The translations under genes and the position numbers were made by a program. From contig CALSCP010001313.1 in the NCBI GenBank assembly GCA_943704425.1, positions 1,308-65,307 on the forward strand: a stretch of DNA of 64,000 bases. The letters run 5' to 3'. The stretch's first letter is position 1. Each line of letters opens with the position of its first letter. Of the stretch, positions 4,795-46,239 are shown one piece after another. The notes under the pieces were generated by a model. That model was not told the DNA's origin, did not search any database, and was given only the letters and a program-made list of their open reading frames with translations. Source of the DNA: Ministeria vibrans ATCC 50519 (lineage: Eukaryota; Protista; Filasterea).

Positions 4795-7519
4795 TTAGAC
4801 GAGTGAGAAAGAGGGCTTGATGTTCATGACAATGCCTCCGTCGTCGTAATCTTCGTCTTCTTCTGAGTCAGAACTACCAGCCATGAACGTGACTGGGGTA
4901 CGGTGGGAGGTTGAGACAGGAGGGGAAGTGGGATCGGTGATTGTGGGGCTGATGAGGGCTACGTTGGATGCAGATGCGGATACTGGTGCGGATACTGGCG
5001 CGGATACAGGTGCGGATACAGGTGCGGGTGCAGATGCAGAGGGTGCAGGTGCAGAGGATGCAGGCACATCGGTGGCGCTGACCACAATACACGTAACCTG
5101 TTCCGACGAGTGCAGTCCTGACGCGTCTGTGGCGTCTGTCGTAGCAGTCGTAACTGTTGTCGTAGTGACTGTTCGTGTGTCGGGAGTTGCGCCCGCATTG
5201 CTCGCCACGCCACCAACCCCAGACCCTACGCCTGCTGCATCTGCTGCTGTTGTTGTAGCTGTCACTGTCGTGGTGGTGGACGCAAGGGGTGCACGAGGGG
5301 TGGCAGAGATGCGTGTCGCCATGGTTGAGTTGCGACGCATTGAGCTCATGCTGACGACGCTGCCAGAGCGCGTAAAGCGGTCTTTGATTGTACGGAAGTT
5401 CTCCGTCAGTTTCTGCGTAAGGGATCGTGATGAGGCAGAGGGACGTACTATAATAAGCGAATAATAAAAACAAGAACGAAAAAAGAGGAGGGTGAGCAGA
5501 GAAAGAGCGCGCAATGGGTTTGTAAGGAAACCAAAAGAACGTACAGTGGTCCGCTTTGAGTTTGTTTGCGAGCAGACACTGTTTGAGGCAATGTACATCG
5601 GAGGGCGCAAACGAGTTGCCTGTACACTCAAACGTCGTCAAGTGTGTGTTGCGCAGCATAGCCAGTGCTACTGCATTTCCTGTCTTTCGGCTCAACTAAA
5701 ACCGAGCGATTTGAGTCAGTTGAAATGTAGATCTTTAAAACTCTTTTCGTTTCTCCCTCCCGTTTTGTCTATTCGTCTCTTAGATATTAACTATCTCTAT
5801 ATATCACGTTCTTTCTTCCTCCCTCATTTCCCTCCCTCTCTTCACTTGTCTCTTCCTCCCAAATTTCCCTCTCTCACTATCAATTTGTTTCTTCTTCCCT
5901 CATTTCCCTCTCTCACTATCACTTTGTTTCTTCTTCCCTCATCTTTCTCTCTCTCTCTCTCTATCACTTTGTTTCTTCTTCCCTCATCTTTTTCTCTCTC
6001 TTTCTCTATCACTTTGTTTCTTCTTCCCTCATCTTTTTCTCTCTCTCTCTATCACTTTGTATCTTTCAACCTCTTTTTTCTCTCTTGCGCTTACTTGGTT
6101 CCCACTGACGTTAAGAGACAAGAGGGCAGTGTCGCCGGAGACAAGGTCAAGCAGGGCAGGGGCAGTGCTGTCGGTAAGGACGCAGTAGGCGAGGTTGACG
6201 GCGACCAGACTGCGGCTTTTGGCGATGGCCTGCAGGATGAGCGCACCCGTGTGCCCAATGAGGTTGTAGCGAAAGTCGACGTGCAACAGCGAAGTGCTGT
6301 CCTCGATAGCGACTGCAAGTGCCCGTGCGCCTAACAGCCCCGCCGAATTCATGCCAATGTCAATGTGTGTGAGAGACGGGTGGCGCGCAACGACGCGCAG
6401 CAGTGTCACGACGCCCTGGTGGCCCGCACAGTGGTTCAGGTTGAGCCGCCGGATCGCCGCGTTGGTCGCCAGGCCCTGTGCAATCACCCGGAACCCCCCG
6501 TCGCGGCCCAGAGGGTTCTTGGCCAAGTTAAGCGTGTGCAGGGTGCGGTTGTGACGCAGGACGTCGGCCACAAGGGAGCAGTACGACTTGCCCATCTGCG
6601 CATGATTGAACGTGAAGCGCGTCAGAGTCGTGTTGCTTGCGAGCGCACGCAGCACCGCCACCACGCCCGCGTGTTGCTTAGTATTCTCGCCTAAACGCGC
6701 TGTTGGGCCAATGGGCGTGCGAGCCATGCTCACGTCGAGGTAGCGCAGCGGCAGCGACGGGTTCTTCAGCAGAAGGTCTGCGACTTGACGGTATACACCT
6801 TCGCTGTGAGCGTGGACCCAGATGGAGCTGAGGTTGACGCGCGTGAGCGACTCGGATGACACGACTATGTCAAGAATAAGCATGGCTGAGCGCATCATGA
6901 GCTCGCCCGTCTCGAGCAGTGTTTGCCCAATCACTCGGTTGTCGCTTAGGTCCAGCTGGGACAAATCCAATTTTTTGCTCATTGTCTCCTTGAGGTGTCG
7001 CAGCGCCGCATGCACCGACGGAGGATTGAGACATTGGAGGGAGCCGTGTAAGGCAAGGCCAGTCACGGGCGGCGAACGTTCGCACAGAATTTGTAGACAA
7101 GAGTCAAAGTGAGCCGTTTTGCGAAACTTGACACATCGAAATGAAACGTGAGTCTACACAGAAACAACAGGCTCAGCAGGGATGGCGTGCTAGGAAGAAA
7201 GAACGTACGGTACAGAGGGTGTCGCGACAGAGGGCGCCGTCGTAACGACAGGCGTCGAGCCAACGATAGACAAAAGGACTCGGCTTGAGATGGTTCTGCA
7301 GAATCAAGTTCAGTACGCACAATTGATCATGTCGTTGCCTGAAAAGAACACATACTTCTTCACAGCGAGCATCATAGGCATTGAGCCACCACGCGAGCCA
7401 TTCAAGTTCTTCGGCAGTCGGTGGAGTGAGCGAGAGCTGTACACGTTTTTGTAACATGTTAGGTTTCAAGCAGAAAACAAGAGACGGGCGCTTACCGTTC
7501 GCGAGTAGTTAGCGCCCAT
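4795..7519 (-). CDS. RNI-like leucine-rich-repeat protein with low-complexity C-terminus, multi-exon
   Basis: Repeated LxxLxLxxNxxGxxG units (LHTLNLAKNPLGRDG, LLHVDFRYNLIGHTG) in ORF 6029-7066; predicted first exon MGANYSRT with GTAAG donor. Confidence 0.7.
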
Positions 7520-7754: not shown

Positions 7755-9267
7755 ATGCGCGGCCAGCAATCGTCGATTGCCATTGTGTGTGCAATGTTTT
7801 TCGTTGTGTACCTGTTGTATTCCCAACCGCACTCCTCCGCACCAATCTCGCACACCGCTGATCTGGTAAACTACGGGTCCTAATACTCCCACGCAGACAC
7901 ACGCATGCACACACCGTCCATCATCCTTTTGGTCGCCTCCTTCCTCCCTTCGCGCTCCTTCGTCTGATTCTTTTTTCTTGTGTGTGTGTGTGTGTGTGTG
8001 TGCAGCCAAGAGAAGCACCGGCTGCTGTTGTAGCAGCACCGCCGCCACCCGTCGCAATACCCGTTGTCCAACCACTGCCAGTGGCTGCAGCACCTCCGGC
8101 GGCGGCAGTCGCAGCACCGGCCGGCAAGCCGGAGGAGGCGTCGTCAACAGAGCCGTCGCATTTTGTGGGCGAAACGGAAACAACGCGAGCACGTATTGCG
8201 CCCAATGCGCTGAATGGGTATCGGGGCGAGCAGAGCCAGAACCGCTGGAAAGTGATGCAGCCGGTGATGGAGAAGGAGCGAGGCGCGGGAACCATCATTG
8301 ACTATGGCGCGGCATTTGGGTTCTTCTCGATGCTTGCGGCCGACCTCAACCGCGTGACGACGCCCTGGGTGTTGAGCGTCGACGATCAGCGACAGAACCG
8401 CGGTCTTGAGTATCACAGCTCTAAGATTGCTGAGTACGAACTGCAACACTGCCTGCTGTGCAATTGCCAGTTCTCCATCCAGCTCATCGACGAGTTTGTA
8501 CGTCGCGGCGTCATGTTTCACATCCAATTTGTCCTGTCCATCTTTCACTGGCTCCCCATCCGTGACGAGGTAAGCACCAATCATTTTTATCAAAGAGAGA
8601 GATGAAACAAGGAGACTGAACGGGACTGGGTGTAGAATCATCACAAGGAGGTGCTGGGTAAGCTGCTGTCGCTGTCGCCCGTCTCGTTCATCGAACTGCC
8701 ACACCGCCTGGAAGGGCCCGGTGACCAGCGCATCTGGTACGGCAGCCGCAGAGAGCCCGAGGAGGCGATTCGGGATGCGCTGGCGGTGCACGGGGACACA
8801 GGTACAGTAGAATTCCTGGGCCAGACCATGGCCAGCTACGAGGGAGGCAAGTGCCAGCGCGACGAAATGCGCGGCAAGGTCTGCTATCGAAAGACTTTTG
8901 TCGTGCGCAACGCATCCGCACGCGCTCGCTACGACACGCAAGCTAAAGGTACACCAGAGAGAGAGAAAGGAGGGAGAAACAAAGTGACAGGAGAGAGAGA
9001 GAGAGAGAGAGGAGAAAGAAACAAAGCGATAGAGAGAGAGAGAAAGGAGGGAGAATGAAACAAAGTGATAGAGAGAGGAGGGAGAAGATGACAGATAGAT
9101 AGAGGGAGGAGGAAGGGAAAACAGTATTGCAACGGACCAGCCCACACTTGCTTTCTCGCTCATTCTCTTTTTCTCTTGTAGGAAAGGAAGCTGAGATGGC
9201 CAAGAAGGCGATTGATGTGCTCAAGTGCACTGGATCCAACCTCTTCTATGGACTCCTTCCCACCTGA
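7755..9267 (+). CDS. Type II membrane class I SAM-dependent methyltransferase (WbdD-MTase-like); exons 7755-7865, 8006-8569, 8636-8948, 9182-9267
   Basis: N-terminal signal anchor SIAIVCAMFFVVYLLY, Pro/Ala-rich stem, motif I IIDYGAAFGFFS, acidic motif II VLSVDD, VLSIFHW, SFIELP. Confidence 0.72.
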
Positions 9268-9491
9268 ATGCGTTCTTACTCTCCTTTTGTCATACTATTT
9301 CTTGCACGCACGCACACACACACCCACCCACACATACAGACATCTGAGTGTGCTCTCCCTCTCTTTCTATCACTTTGTTTCTTTCCCTCTCCTCTCCCTC
9401 TCTCTCGTTCTTTCTTTTTCAGTCCTGCCTCAATTGTGACACTATTGATACAGTCTAATTTTAATTTTTGATACAGTCAGCCTCAGCTGAG

Positions 9492-10460
9492 TTACGTTGC
9501 ATGGCGTGGGATGAGTGCCTCGAGATCACTGCGGTCGGGCACAGTGCCGTGCTGCGCCGAGTTCACCAGCGCCTGTACTTGCTGAGCATACTCATCAGGC
9601 GCCTTCCACAGGATCGCCTTGAGGTTTTGTCCGTAGTAGTACGTGTTGAACTCTTCGCGGTAGTTTGCGTCGGGACGGTAGTACGGCTTGCCGCGATGGT
9701 TGGCGGGGTCACCACACTTGCCTGCCTTCGATCCCATGTCCGCCAAATCGTCTACATCGCTAATCATCCACGAGCCGTCATCGCGAATTGCATAGTTTTT
9801 CGCATAGCCATCGCACAGAATGAGCTTATTGCTATTGAGAAACAAAAGTGCGTCGAGTAACAGTAGCGCCGTTTGCACCTGTGCCGGCCAGGGATCCGGC
9901 ATGCTATCCATCCAGGCGTTGTACTGGTCGGCGTGCAGTGGTCGCGTCGTTTCCAGCAGTGTTGCAAAGAGCCCTTCGCCTTCCATGCAGGATCCAACAA
10001 AGGTATACACTCGCTTTGTCCATGCGTATTTTTGCAGTGCCTCGATCGAATGGCGAAAGAACGTCTCCTTGTAGCGTGCCTGCTTCGGGCGAGACAAAGC
10101 AACGAGATGACCACCTGCCATTCCCACGGTGATCTTCTTCACGGACTGGCCGCCAAGATCGTACCAATCCTGAGCCTGATCGAGTTCAGCGCAACCCAGC
10201 ATTGTCTGTATTGCCAGAGGGGCCACTGCCGGTGGCTCTGGAGGGAAAAAAGAAGACGTCACGTCTGATACCGACGGTACAGGTGGTCCAGGCAATGGAG
10301 ATGGAGGAGGAGGAGGAGGAGGAGGTGGAGGTGGAGGTGGAGGTGGCGATACACGTGCTGGCGGGCACACTTCACACTTGAATGAAGTCGTGTACCACAC
10401 GTTGGCAAAGGTCACCACCAGGGCGAACACAACAAAGAGTAAACCGGGTCGTCGAGACAT
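9492..10460 (-). CDS. Type II membrane secretory-pathway kinase, POMK (SgK196)/PKDCC-like, single exon
   Basis: TM LLFVVFALVVTFANVWY, poly-Pro stem, LGCAEL, GGQSVKK, VALS in place of VAIK, LILCD catalytic loop, SDVDDL in place of DFG. Confidence 0.72.
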   Translation of the reverse strand: MSRRPGLLFVVFALVVTFANVWYTTSFKCEVCPPARVSPPPPPPPPPPPPPPPSPLPGPPVPSVSDVTSSFFPPEPPAVAPLAIQTMLGCAELDQAQDWYDLGGQSVKKITVGMAGGHLVALSRPKQARYKETFFRHSIEALQKYAWTKRVYTFVGSCMEGEGLFATLLETTRPLHADQYNAWMDSMPDPWPAQVQTALLLLDALLFLNSNKLILCDGYAKNYAIRDDGSWMISDVDDLADMGSKAGKCGDPANHRGKPYYRPDANYREEFNTYYYGQNLKAILWKAPDEYAQQVQALVNSAQHGTVPDRSDLEALIPRHAT

Positions 10461-10547: not shown

Positions 10548-12919
10548 TCACAAAGCGGGGCGGTTGAACAGCTGGGGAGCGGACTTGCCGGCGTAGAATT
10601 CCAGAAGAGCGCGCGCCTTGCTCTCGACGTTGGAAGTTGAGAAACCAAAGTGGTCCATGACGGCGGAGCCCTTGCCACTGGCGCCAAAGGAGTGCATGGC
10701 AATCTGCGCATGGGAGTACTTCTCCCAGCCCATGGCAACGGCCGCCTCCACGGCAAGGGTGGGCACGCCATCGGCAAACACGCTTGTCTGGTAGTCGGCG
10801 GGCTGCTGATCAAACAGCTCCATGCAAGGCATCGACACGACACGCACGCGTACGTCGGCCATGTTCTTGGCTGCCTCGACACAAAGCGAAACCTCCGAGC
10901 CTGAAGCGACCAGCACAAGCTGCGGCTCGTCCGTTGTCGCCACGAGGGTGTAGGCGCCCTTGAAAACACCGTCGATGCTGGTACCGGCAAGGTGAGGCAG
11001 GTTTTGGCGCGAGAAGCAGAGCACGGAAGGCACGGAGGGGCTCTCGAGGGCGACGGCGTACGCGCCACTCACCTCGTTTCCGTCGCAGGGACGCAAGAGC
11101 AGCATGTTGGGCATAGCACGGACGAGAGCAAGCGACTCGATAGGCTGATGAGTGGGGCCGTCCTCGCCGAGGCCAATGGAGTCGTGGGTCATGACGTAGA
11201 GCACACGGAAGCGCGACAGGGCCGACAAACGCATGGCACCCAGTGCATAGCCAATGAAGTTGAGGAAGGTGGCGCAGTAGGGTACAAAGGCACCGTAGGC
11301 AGTGAGGCCGTTGCAGACGGCAGCCATGGCATGCTCACGTACCCCAAAGTGGAAGTAGCGGCCGTCGCGGGTGTTTGGCTGGAAGCTGTGCGAGCACTTG
11401 AGCCAGGTGAGCGTCGACGGGGTCAAGTCGGCACTGCCGCCGACGAGCTCGGGCATGCGTGGCGCAATCGCATTCAGCACGCCCTCCGACAGCTTGCGCG
11501 TCGCCATGGGTGCGTCCGACGGTGAGAACGTTGGCAGTGCCGCGCGCCAGTCGGACGGAAGTTCGCCTCGGAAGCGGCGTTCGAGCTCGGCAGCGTCGCT
11601 TGCATGCGCAGCCTTGTACCCTGCGAATTTGGTCTTCCACTCGTCGTGTGCCGCACGTCCTACACGTCCAAAGAAAGCACAATGAGTATATAAATGTATT
11701 TGATTAATTGGAGAGAGAGAGGGGCAAGAAGAGCGGTTGGGTACCCTTTGCAGCGACCGTCTTGAAGGCAGCGGCGACCTCGTCGGGAATGGCAAAGGAC
11801 GCACTCGCGTCCATGCCAAATTTGGTCTTGAGCTGCGCAATGTCGTCAGCCTTGAGTGGCGCACCGTGCACACCGGCGGTGTTCTCATTGAGCGACCCGT
11901 AGCCAATGATGGTCTTGACCGAGATGAACGAGGGGCGGTCCGTCACCGCCTTGGCCTCGTCGATGGCCGCGGCAATAGCCGCCAGGTCCGTGTTGCCATT
12001 GGCCACGGTGATCGTGTGCCAGCCGTAAGATGCATAGCGAGCAGCAACGTCCTCTGTAAAGCTCAGGTCGGTTGCACCGTCAATGGTAATCTTGTTGTCG
12101 TCGTACAGCACAATGAGACGCCCCAACTTGAGGTGGCCCGCCAGCGACGCCGCCTCCAGCGCCACGCCCTCCTGGTTGCAGCCATCGCCCATGATCACAA
12201 ACGTGTAGTTGTTAAACAGCTCAAAGCCGTCGCGATTGAAGGTCGCCGCAAGATGCTCTTGGGCACAGGCAAGACCAACAGCATTCGCAAAACCTAAGTC
12301 ACAAACAAACAAAGAGAAAAAAAAAAGAAGAAAAAAAAAAACGGAGCGCTCGTGTGAGATTTGTCGCATCTGGTTCGTATTGACATTCGATGGAGGAGAC
12401 CTTGGCCAAGGGGACCGGTTGTCACCTCAACACCTGGGGTGTGGTGAACCTCGGGATGGCCCGGGGTGCTGCAGGAGAGGAGAGAGAAGGAATGAAAGAC
12501 AATTCGCTGGATGACTTTGGTTTTACCGGCTGCCAAGCTTGCGGAAGTTACGCAGGTCGTCGAGCGACAGGTCGTAGCCGGTGAGATGGAGCATGGTGTA
12601 CTGCAGGGCGCAGGCATGGCCATTCGACAAGACGAAACGGTCGCGATTCCACTGAAAGAAAAACGATCAATTTTATGCAACTGCAACACACACACACACA
12701 CACACACACACATCTTGGGGTAGGGCACACTACAACACATACCCAGTGTGGGTCGGACGAGTCGTAGCGCATGGCGTGGGCCCAGAGGACGTACGCCATG
12801 GGCGCACAGCCGATGGGCGCACCGGGATGGCCCGAGCTGGCCGCCGACGGCTGATCGGCCGAAAGGCAACGGATCGTGTCGACGCACTTGGCGCTCAACG
12901 CATCGAATTCAGTAGACAT
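10548..12919 (-). CDS. TKT: Transketolase, multi-exon
   Basis: [40 protein letters not shown] (TPP motif), [23 protein letters not shown]. Confidence 0.96.
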
Positions 12920-44703: not shown

Positions 44704-45786
44704 TTACAGCTTTGATTTCGATCGCGATGTCACAAATTCCAGAATCGCATTGGCAGATTCCTCAGAACTATACCTACAACAAACAAAACAAAAATTAGTG
44801 TGTCACGAATGTATGTGTATCCTGGCGCGAAATGCAAAGGCGCACCGCTTAGCGAGAAGCACACATTCACGCTCATTGACGCGCGTAAGAGTGCCGCGCA
44901 GCTCAGTCTGCAGCAGTGCTTTGGCGTCGAGCAGCGCACCCGCAGCCAGCCCCTCGAGCATTGCAAGACGCGCATTGAATTCGCGCTGAAAAAAAGACAA
45001 ACGCCCCCCGTTGTGTATGTGTCACCAGTAGTGCATTGTCGCTCTGCATGTGAGACTGGGGTACCTGAAAAGAATCAACGGGAAACACTTCGCTGACAAG
45101 ACCACAGGAAAGCGCTTCGGTTGCGCTGAGAGTACGACCACGCAGAAGCACATCGTTGGCCAGCGCACGGCCCATCAGCAGGGGAAAGGTGTAGGAGGAG
45201 CACGCCTCGGGCGACTGCGCCAGCTTCATGAACGGCGTCATAAAAGTCGCCGTTGAGCTCGCATACACGTGGTCCGATAGTCCCAGAAGCGTCACGCCCA
45301 CACCGACGGCCGGCCCATTCACCCCGACGCACACAAGCTTGGTGCAATTGATGAAGGCCAGGGCAAAGCGCCTGAAGCGGCTCACCCCTTCGTCCATCAG
45401 CTGAGCCGGGTCGCCTCCTTTCATCATTAGCTCCATGGATGCCTTCAAGTCGTTGCCCGCCGTGAAGTACTTGCCTTCGCCCGTGATGGCCTGGATGGAA
45501 CGACGATCAAAAAAAAGAGCAGTTCGACGCTGCCTATTGGGAAGTTCCGTCGTACCACAATAGTAATGCCTGCCTCGCTGGATGCGTAATTCAACACATT
45601 CGTAATGTCCTCGTACACTTCCGAGTTGATCGCATTGTACTTCTGCGAGAATAGGATGAGACGGATCATAATTCGCAAAGGGTTGAGTTTGTTATTATTC
45701 ACCTTTGGTCGAGACAGCGTCAATTTTAGAACCGATCCTTTCCTTTCCACCACGACATTCGAACTAAATAGCGGTGGGGGTGACAT
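44704..45786 (-). CDS. ECI2: Peroxisomal enoyl-CoA delta isomerase (crotonase fold) with PTS1
   Basis: RPKKYNAI, FTAGNDL, VNGPAVGVGVT, TPFMKLAQSPEACSSYTFP; last exon ends SKSKL*. Confidence 0.85.
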
Positions 45787-46239
45787 CACACTGGTTCACA
45801 AAGAAAAGTGAAGATCAGATAACAGATTAAAATTGTCCATTTCGAAATTCGAATCAGTATTCAGTAATTTTCATTATATTATTTAGCAGGTACGAACACC
45901 CTCCTTCTTCTTTGTGTCCTTCTCCTTCCCCATTCTTTCGTGACATGTGAAGATGTGGTGTTCCTCTGGCTTCTGCACGCACTCTTGATTGTCAACTGGT
46001 TTTTTTTTGCTCTCTTTTTTGACATGTCACTCCCTTTTCCCTTTTTTTTTGCGAAATCGCTGTCTAAATTCCACGCCCGCACCTGTCAATGTACCATCTG
46101 CATGCCATTATTTAATTTCCATGGCGAACCGCGCGGCGGACGCTCTTATTTGGCGTTTTATCGCTACTGTGTTTTTTTTTGTTTGAACTTGGAACTCACA
46201 AACACAAAAAAAAAACAAAAAACACTCAATAGGACGGAG

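Follow-up and report, generated by a model that had tools for sequence, protein, structure and literature searches.

In this study, a stretch of Ministeria vibrans DNA, 64,000 nucleotides long and referred to as the window, was observed to harbor a gene for a SAM methyltransferase (MTase) placed tail-to-tail with a gene for a putative divergent relative of the kinase POMK. With regard to function, we give slightly better than even chances to the reading, drawn from sequence comparison, in which the two products form a two-enzyme module of the ER/Golgi lumen that would phosphorylate a glycan and afterwards methylate the phosphate. Relatives of the MTase occur time and again as kinase fusions in other organisms, which makes it probable that the pair caps secreted glycans with methyl-phosphate. 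The kinase would use ATP to phosphorylate a hydroxyl group of a sugar in a secretory-pathway glycan, the acceptor sugar most likely being mannose by analogy with POMK, which acts at C6 of O-linked mannose; the neighbouring MTase would then methylate that phosphate to give a methyl-phosphate diester, and the resulting cap would be phosphatase-resistant and would block further extension. Arranged in this manner, the pair would be the eukaryotic equivalent, split over two genes, of WbdD of E. coli O9a (4AZS, 4AZW, 4AX8, 4UW0), the bifunctional kinase and phosphate methyltransferase that caps the polymannose O antigen. We infer that the two proteins share a substrate, that this substrate is a glycan and that its phosphate is the methyl acceptor. 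An earlier reading of the letters without database searches (the sequence-only reading) had already put forward this split phosphorylate-then-methylate idea, which the comparisons reported here partly support.

Layout of the locus and gene models

Ministeria vibrans is a single-celled relative of animals. In the window, the MTase gene (7755-9267, + strand) and the kinase gene (9492-10460, - strand) run towards each other, and the base-by-base models, in which the two stops bound positions 9268-9491, bear out the convergent, adjacent arrangement with 224 bp between stops that the sequence-only reading had described. The MTase gene consists of four exons totalling 1074 nt, that is 357 codons plus the stop, and all three of its introns are of the GT..AG type. 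This model is backed by a paralogue with a shared intron position, as well as by homologues that align over exons 2 and 3 and over the C-terminal Cys motif of exon 4. The features are as follows.

7755..7865, + strand: MTase exon 1, with the start Met, the short N-terminus MRGQQSS and a hydrophobic signal-anchor of about 16 residues, GT donor at 7866 (from translation)
7866..8005, + strand: MTase intron 1, GT..AG, with a (GT)n run at its end; the frame continues over the junction
8006..8569, + strand: MTase exon 2, Pro/Ala-rich stem and then the N-terminal half of the class I MTase domain (from translation, family and WbdD alignments, and Atlas)
8570..8635, + strand: MTase intron 2, 66 nt, GT..AG, with an in-frame TGA inside; the C1671 paralogue has an intron at the identical codon
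8636..8948, + strand: MTase exon 3, encoding the domain's C-terminal half, with FIELP, WY and the conserved Arg that precedes the last strand; its end is in phase 1, and it aligns with the family
8949..9181, + strand: MTase intron 3, GT..AG, containing a purine-rich repeat
9182..9267, + strand: MTase exon 4, C-terminal tail with a family-conserved Cys, TGA stop at 9265-9267; the tail is like those of the paralogue and the homologues
9268..9491, no strand: intergenic spacer, 224 bp, which must contain the 3' ends of both genes; the second arm of an inverted repeat lies here
9492..10460, - strand: POMK-like kinase, single exon, 322 aa, comprising a type II anchor, a poly-Pro stem and, at about residues 87-322, the kinase domain (from the ORF and the POMK, PIP49_C and Atlas matches)

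The MTase gene product is a type II membrane protein in which a Pro/Ala stem precedes a class I SAM methyltransferase domain. Its exon 2 displays the motifs GY, RW, DYGAAFGFFS, SVD, H and Q..LSIFHW, with the SAM motif I IIDYGAAFGFFS and LSIFHWLP, and the class I assignment of this exon is also indicated by Atlas. The kinase begins with a short basic N-terminus, followed by a single hydrophobic anchor and a run of 15 Pro inside a longer Pro-rich stem. The translations therefore confirm that both proteins are of type II with a Pro-rich stem before the catalytic domain, and the motifs, the family alignment and the POMK-type residues likewise establish the claimed pairing of one SAM methyltransferase with one atypical kinase. 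The further suggestion that the Pro-rich stems act as a length ruler like that of WbdD found no support; such stems are common among Golgi enzymes.

The POMK-like kinase and its acceptor groove

Among solved structures, POMK (5gz8) was the sole meaningful match of the window kinase (HMMER, E 0.0024, residues 87-289), and this sequence match to the PDB is weak. The best Pfam match was PIP49_C at 0.0011, below the cut-off of that model, and a protein-kinase fold was also indicated by Atlas. The fold was called from these three matches, as the AlphaFold model of the kinase domain, made with no real alignment, reached a pLDDT of only 37 and was unusable. A word-index search returned near-identical sequences only, with no match to POMK, and no paralogue of the kinase was detected in the M. 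vibrans genome.

The catalytic residues of POMK are relocated, with a Lys on strand beta2, a Ser at the beta3 Lys site, no Glu in helix alphaC, a Cys-Asp and a D-x-D (PMC5142810), and all of these traits are shared by the window kinase, which also has the type II topology and luminal kinase domain of POMK/SGK196 (5GZ8, 5GZ9). In the alignment to 5gz8, K108 pairs with DrPOMK K91 at the start of strand beta2, S123 (in VALSR) pairs with DrPOMK S106 in the beta3 Lys position, and helix alphaC carries no Glu. Similarly, L215-C216-D217 aligns with the MCD of POMK, the Met being Leu here, D235-V236-D237 aligns with DLD in place of DFG, and K248-C249-G250 aligns with KCG. The Cys pairs C90/C158 and C216/C249 match the 72-139 and 201-241 disulfides of POMK, of which Cys201-Cys241 ties the catalytic loop to the activation segment. 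Judging from these residues, we propose to place the window kinase in the POMK group as a divergent member.

The resemblance stops at the catalytic loop and the acceptor groove. The POMK loop is five residues longer than that of PKA and has a short helix bearing K208 and Q212, whereas the loop of the window kinase (D217-G-Y-A-K221-N222) is five residues shorter than that of POMK and so does not hold the K208/Q212 helix; instead, it has K221, and N222 occupies the canonical +5 position after the catalytic Asp. The groove that receives GalNAc-b3-GlcNAc-b4-Man in POMK is formed by D116, N204, A228, G242 and H243, and these correspond to T133, Y219, D238, G250 and D251 in the window kinase, with only the Gly retained; an Ala-to-Glu change at the groove Ala inactivates human POMK. 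With one out of five groove residues kept, the window kinase is predicted to use another acceptor, which is probably not the core M3 trisaccharide, and it is unlikely to be a plain core-M3 POMK. Thus the POMK likeness claimed by the sequence-only reading stands for the relocated catalytic residues, the two disulfides and the top structure match, but not for the acceptor-binding residues or the long catalytic loop.

These replacements (D116 by Thr, N204 by Tyr, A228 by Asp and H243 by Asp) also weigh against a rival view in which the two genes are independent neighbours, the POMK-type kinase serving an animal-like O-mannose pathway and the MTase belonging to some other pathway. We consider this view unlikely, though a serious contender, and the genomic observations that bear on it are given below.

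The methyltransferase family and its affinity to WbdD

The window MTase displays all 17 of the 17 positions that are invariant or near-invariant in its family, and no model of Pfam or NCBIfam recognises either its pieces or any family member. When the family profile of 18 rows was compared with the PDB, the top matches were four WbdD entries (E 1.8e-4), the next protein following at 5.7e-3. This match is remote (24 bits, about 17% identity), and WbdD was found in the PDB only by this 18-row profile, not by a single MTase sequence or a two-row profile. In the alignment, WbdD R36, D82 and H132 correspond to the invariant Arg (of RW), the acidic residue ending strand 2 and the invariant His of the family, and the window MTase has both counterparts of the SAM-contacting Arg36 and Asp82. 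Phosphate is bound in WbdD by His132, His133 and Arg203, and Tyr16 is essential. Of the two essential His residues, the first thus aligns with an invariant His, but the second, H133, with an invariant Trp; the last strand begins with an invariant Arg, close to the R203 site, the alignment ending before that point, and an invariant Tyr is found upstream, with spacing unlike that of WbdD Tyr16.

The fold was read from a full-length model of a homologue (P0004) and not from the window protein; this model shows a class I MTase fold with pLDDT >90 over residues 117-330, and all of its top structural matches are class I MTases. In VIA-align, WbdD ties for the best match, level with TehB, whereas Foldseek ranks generic O-methyltransferases above WbdD and does not single it out, so that the WbdD hit expected from structure searching appeared with the first program and not with the second. 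Being headed by WbdD in the profile comparison and tied with it in the structural one, the MTase does not match an unrelated family, in agreement with the WbdD-like label of the sequence-only reading.

The parallel with O9a WbdD extends to the coupling of an MTase to a protein-kinase fold, with family fusions occurring in either domain order, and to a glycan-biosynthesis genomic context. The differences are also considerable, as the window pair comprises two separate convergent genes for type II proteins of the secretory pathway rather than one enzyme of the bacterial cytoplasmic face, its kinase is POMK-like and not that of WbdD, and it has no coiled-coil ruler.

The same residues bear on the possibility that the MTase methylates a sugar hydroxyl directly, like the serotype O8 WbdD, with the kinase and the MTase modifying glycans each on its own or at separate positions. 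The O8 enzyme, a relative of O9a WbdD, is a plain O-methyltransferase, and the Trp at H133, the unproven R203 equivalent and the hydroxyl O-methyltransferases at the head of the Foldseek matches are all compatible with such an activity. However, what separates the phosphate-methylating O9a enzyme from the O8 enzyme is kinase fusion, a trait that the MTase family shares, and an anion could be bound by the invariant His that matches H132, by the invariant Arg at the beginning of the last strand and by another conserved His. Hydroxyl methylation is judged quite improbable, below the independent neighbours.

With reference to MePCE/Bin3, the 7SK RNA capping enzyme (6DCB), which is likewise a class I MTase methylating a phosphate oxygen, membership was rejected because no sequence-level match was obtained in the PDB and Pfam searches, including the Bin3 model; that enzyme is nuclear, acts on RNA and ranks below WbdD. 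The word-index search with the exon 2 ORF returned near-identical sequences only, and the one with the family profile was swamped by candidates, yet yielded a Euglena longa protein (P0030). A narrower MTase alignment found no related loci in the bacterial and archaeal genome set, and the profile matches P0007, P0011 and P0012 were discarded as repeat proteins.

Kinase linkage and glycan context of the family

Members of the MTase family were found fused to or abutting kinase domains in at least four separate architectures. The Euglena longa protein combines a membrane anchor, a C-type lectin domain, a Pkinase domain and the MTase; in Astrolonche (P0013) a PIP49-like kinase is followed by the MTase; in the metagenomic proteins P0017 and L033 the MTase comes first and the kinase second; and on the viral contig L031 the MTase is fused to a mini-kinase, whose homologue (z ~31) in the L014 glycan cluster is a stand-alone kinase gene that abuts the MTase. 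The window kinase resembles the kinases of P0017 (z ~7) and L014 (z ~5), and shows no detectable similarity to two other family-linked kinases. As the linked kinases elsewhere are of different subfamilies, the pairing of a POMK-like kinase with the MTase is seen only at this locus. The linkage anticipated in other organisms thus recurs for the MTase with kinases in general, as fusions or abutting genes, but not for the POMK-like combination. In the bacterial operons L038 and L040, a 281-aa ORF downstream of the MTase was not counted as a kinase, since it gave only a CotS hint (E 0.012) despite its D..N and IDLE motifs.

In the window itself the coupling is adjacency only, and adjacency inside a compact 30-Mb genome is, taken alone, weak evidence. 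Several further observations are in keeping with independent neighbours. The M. vibrans genome contains three PMT genes, four GT61 matches, several GT49 (LARGE/B4GAT1-like) matches, three LicD (FKTN/FKRP-like) matches and one Stealth/GNPTAB-like gene, and a published study reports POMK, B4GAT1 and LARGE1 from Capsaspora and choanoflagellates (PMC4582122). Because the Stealth/GNPTAB-like gene is GlcNAc-1-phosphotransferase-like, the MTase could act on Man-6-P made without a kinase, by that transferase and an uncovering enzyme, as in Dictyostelium. In addition, no relevant kinase lies next to any of the three further MTase-family genes of M. vibrans (C1671, C1768 and a degenerate one on C2383). 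On the other side, kinase fusion or abutment recurs in unrelated lineages, making a chance pairing less likely, and this recurrence argues for the proposed two-enzyme module.

The surroundings of the family point to glycans, as its genes adjoin glycosyltransferases or sugar-nucleotide enzymes in L014, the P0019 operons, P0016, P0003 and P0005. These neighbourhoods, the lectin domain of the Euglena fusion and the fact that every checkable catalytic or invariant residue is kept in both window proteins all speak against the view that at least one of the two proteins works on something other than a glycan, for instance lipids or secreted proteins, or is a catalytically dead scaffold. We regard that view as very improbable, although POMK-related secretory kinases (FAM69/PIP49, PKDCC) act on proteins and PIP49_C was the best Pfam match of the window kinase, and although one secreted protein of M. 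vibrans contains the MTase domain in three degenerate copies.

Knowledge of glycan methyl-phosphate in Dictyostelium goes back to the 1980s, and the group also occurs in bacterial O antigens. Dictyostelium makes Man-6-P-OMe on its N-glycans by a Golgi phosphomannose methyltransferase activity, and this luminal, SAM-dependent methylation of a sugar phosphate would give the product proposed for the window pair. The phosphate there comes from GlcNAc-1-phosphotransferase and not from a kinase, and the Dictyostelium discoideum family member (P0009, KAM9993903.1), in which every invariant residue is present, is fused to DUF218 and not to a kinase, which again accords with independent neighbours. The literature searched names no gene for the Dictyostelium phosphomannose methyltransferase, nor any eukaryotic gene for the methylation step of glycan methyl-phosphate. 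We infer that the Dictyostelium activity may belong to the MTase family of P0009. More broadly, and tentatively, as we lean somewhat against it, the Pfam-less family may be a general eukaryotic glycan-phosphate methyltransferase, including the Dictyostelium enzyme, that together with lineage-recruited kinases makes up a capping module widespread across protists, giant viruses and bacteria, the kinase recruited in M. vibrans being of the POMK type. Should the module prove real, one MTase family would have been combined repeatedly with different kinases to arrive at the same two-step capping chemistry. Outside animals, the glycan served by a POMK-type kinase may be one other than the core M3 of dystroglycan, which bears on the origin of the animal O-mannose pathway. 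The locus and the MTase family provide concrete candidates in the Dictyostelium gene and in the natural kinase-MTase fusions, one of them with a lectin domain.

Gene models and layout of the gene pair

The window is eukaryotic, from a source assembly of 29.7 Mb in 2860 contigs, and it harbors a methyltransferase (MTase) gene and a kinase gene that run towards each other, with 224 bp between their stop codons. The sequence-only reading had described this pair, and checking of the gene models and the spacing found it right in all particulars.

7755-7865, + strand: MTase exon 1, with a seven-residue N-terminus and a hydrophobic anchor
8006-8569, + strand: MTase exon 2, with a Pro/Ala-rich stem, then SAM motif I (IIDYGAAFGFFS) and LSIFHWLP
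8636-8948, + strand: MTase exon 3, with FIELP, WY and the conserved Arg
9182-9267, + strand: MTase exon 4, with the conserved C-terminal Cys
9492-10460, - strand: kinase, a single ORF of 322 aa

The four MTase exons total 1074 nt, and a base-by-base check showed all three introns to be GT..AG. The kinase ORF displays, in order, a short basic N-terminus, an anchor, a Pro-rich stem including a run of 15 Pro, and the catalytic domain. The searches used single MTase exons, left unjoined, or full-length homologues from databases as queries.

Around the pair, an ORF for an LRR protein (6029-7066, - strand) lies upstream of the MTase gene, and a transketolase gene of at least two exons (10548-12369, - strand) directly adjoins the 5' end of the kinase gene. 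The two arms of a 60-nt inverted repeat (80% complementary) lie in MTase intron 3 (9018-9077) and in the 224-bp spacer (9361-9420), bracketing exon 4; the unit is a purine-rich repeat (GAAACAAAGYGATAGAGAGAG) that recurs on contig L025, where it shows as spurious ORFs whose peptide strings match. Additionally, a 99%-identical kinase copy (P0002) was noticed on two short contigs, L008 and L009 (ENA ERZ23497376 and Logan SRR23272272), from two environmental or host-associated samples, indicating that the window organism or a very close relative was sequenced there incidentally.

The methyltransferase family and WbdD

No Pfam or NCBIfam model matched the window MTase exons. An exhaustive HMMER search of 1.8 billion representative proteins, with a profile built from exon 2 and its paralogue, gave only 21 matches at E up to 0.001, three of which were discarded as repeat proteins; the true matches form a small family that has no Pfam model. 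Its invariant or near-invariant positions comprise GY, RW, D-Y-G-S-N-x-G-F-F-S, the acidic residue ending strand 2, a His followed by Q..LS.FHW, TTF.ELP, WY, and an Arg opening the last strand, and the window MTase has every one of them. Eukaryotic members come from Entosiphon, the diplonemid Namystynia, Paratrimastix, Astrolonche, Euglena longa and Dictyostelium discoideum, the Entosiphon member sharing type II membrane topology and a Pro stem with the window protein. The others derive from a Chlamydiales MAG, a 59-member bacterial cluster including a Poribacteria MAG, a viral contig and several metagenomes.

The window's own genome carries four family genes: the window copy, a paralogue 64% identical to it (C1671), and copies on C1768 and C2383. 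The C1768 copy (45441-45818, - strand; locus L022; profile E 8.6e-16) looks intact and has its hydrophobic anchor at the C-terminus, not the N-terminus; the only kinase-like gene near it encodes a SCYL1-type pseudokinase about 3 kb off. The C2383 gene (L025:6766 to L026:760) encodes a secreted protein with a signal peptide, a Pro-rich region and three tandem degenerate MTase domains, which have lost motif I and the His-Trp pair, with TTFIELP retained in one copy. This protein is probably a pseudoenzyme, and no kinase domain was detected within or next to it.

When the 18-row family alignment was turned into a profile and compared with all PDB sequences, the top matches were four WbdD entries (E 1.8e-4 to 2.4e-4; next protein 5.7e-3), aligned from before motif I up to the ELP/ELA motif. 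R36 and D82, which contact SAM in WbdD, and H132 (PMC3482155) align with invariant family residues, whereas H133 aligns with the family's invariant Trp. By this profile comparison, no solved structure is closer to the family than the WbdD MTase domain. The proposal of a WbdD-like MTase thus holds as to rank, but the relationship is remote and the WbdD phosphate-binding triad is only partly recognisable in the family. Direct methylation of a hydroxyl by the MTase appears improbable to us.

The kinase and POMK

Among all solved structures, the sole meaningful match of the kinase was zebrafish POMK 5gz8 (E 0.0024, residues 87-289). In Pfam it matched PIP49_C slightly under the cut-off, and its protein-language look-alikes were all protein kinases, PKDCC-like ones among them; an AlphaFold model made without a real alignment reached pLDDT 37. 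Most of the unusual POMK active site, as defined in the structure paper (PMC5142810), is reproduced in the alignment: K108 matches K91, the Lys opening strand beta2; S123 (in VALSR) matches S106, the Ser at the usual place of the beta3 Lys; the Glu of alphaC is absent; L215-C216-D217 and D235-V236-D237 match the M-C-D catalytic motif and D-L-D; and C90/C158 and C216/C249 correspond to the 72-139 and 201-241 disulfides. However, the catalytic loop lacks the five-residue POMK insertion bearing K208 and Q212, having in its place K221-N222, where the Asn occupies the canonical +5 position, and the residues holding GalNAc-b3-GlcNAc are substituted (D116 to Thr, N204 to Tyr, A228 to Asp, H243 to Asp). 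Human POMK loses its activity when the Ala matching A228 is changed to Glu (PMC5142810). The POMK-like label therefore stands for the catalytic residues and both disulfides, but not for the loop insertion and the acceptor residues, and from this alignment we read the protein as a kinase of the POMK group that is presumably competent but has an acceptor other than that of POMK. Non-glycan substrates or dead enzymes are considered very improbable here, the C2383 pseudoenzyme being set against the complete family positions of the window MTase and the matching catalytic residues of the kinase.

No kinase paralogue was detectable in the window's genome. POMK-like genes of Capsaspora and choanoflagellates have been published (PMC4582122), and by itself the kinase is therefore no novelty.

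Linkage elsewhere and the proposed module

Linkage of the MTase with kinases beyond the window was observed in several members. Euglena longa P0030 (892 aa) is membrane-anchored and combines a C-type lectin domain (1.5e-9), Pkinase (7.8e-25) and the MTase; in Astrolonche P0013, the MTase comes after the C-lobe of a PIP49-like kinase; and P0017 (578 aa) carries the MTase between a signal or anchor sequence and a kinase (Pkinase 8.2e-11) whose DFG is replaced by D-I-D, the P0017 relative on L033 having D-L-D. On L031, a 188-kb IMG/VR viral contig, the MTase and a mini-kinase share one ORF. On L014 the same mini-kinase (Smith-Waterman z about 31) has its own gene, which begins one base past the MTase gene; one genome thus has the pair fused and another has it split. 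The L014 pair sits within a cluster of glycosyltransferases, epimerases and an aminotransferase, and further family genes adjoin glycosyltransferases or sugar-nucleotide enzymes. The kinases of P0017 (z about 7) and L014 (z about 5) resemble the window kinase to a modest but significant degree; those of Euglena and Astrolonche show no similarity to it.

In the bacterial branch (P0019 cluster, 59 members), an ORF of 270-281 aa always comes after the MTase gene, abutting it or, in L040, overlapping it (L038:1133-1981, L040:5662-6504, L015:2854-3186). It has no Pfam match, carries YDLTYHN and FIDLE motifs with a weak CotS-family hint, and may be an unrecognised kinase.

This linkage moves the window pair from two neighbours to a probable module. 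We somewhat favour a luminal module in which both proteins would face the lumen, the kinase would phosphorylate a sugar hydroxyl of a glycan, and the MTase would methylate that phosphate into a capped diester. Counting against this module, none of the three other family genes of the genome has a relevant kinase neighbour, the linked kinases belong to several subfamilies, and the genome has animal-type O-mannose pathway parts (PMT, GT61, GT49, LicD) and a Stealth/GlcNAc-1-phosphotransferase-like gene (G000:C386:23156-23476; Stealth_CR2, E 9.8e-46). Weighing these against the linkage elsewhere, we regard independent neighbours as a possible but rather unlikely account. Nothing was found in support of Pro-rich stems measuring distance like the WbdD coiled coil.

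Dictyostelium makes Man-6-P-OMe glycans, with Man-6-P arising there without a kinase. By analogy, O-mannose glycans could be what the window kinase serves, with Man-6-P of kinase-free origin being methylated by the MTase. P0009 of Dictyostelium discoideum (KAM9993903.1) and L032:135-1700 join a membrane anchor, DUF218 and the MTase in one protein, and P0009 is a testable candidate for the Dictyostelium Man-6-P methyltransferase. In the one literature collection searched, where absence is not proof, no paper was found that names this gene or any eukaryotic glycan-phosphate methylation gene, or that describes the MTase family. Returning to the module, we class the window pair as putative kinase-plus-MTase capping of the WbdD type, which is known; the split form and the location in the eukaryotic secretory pathway would, if true, be new. 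The PMT, GT61, GT49, LicD and Stealth-like genes together form an animal-like toolkit of glycan phosphorylation and O-mannosylation in a protist.
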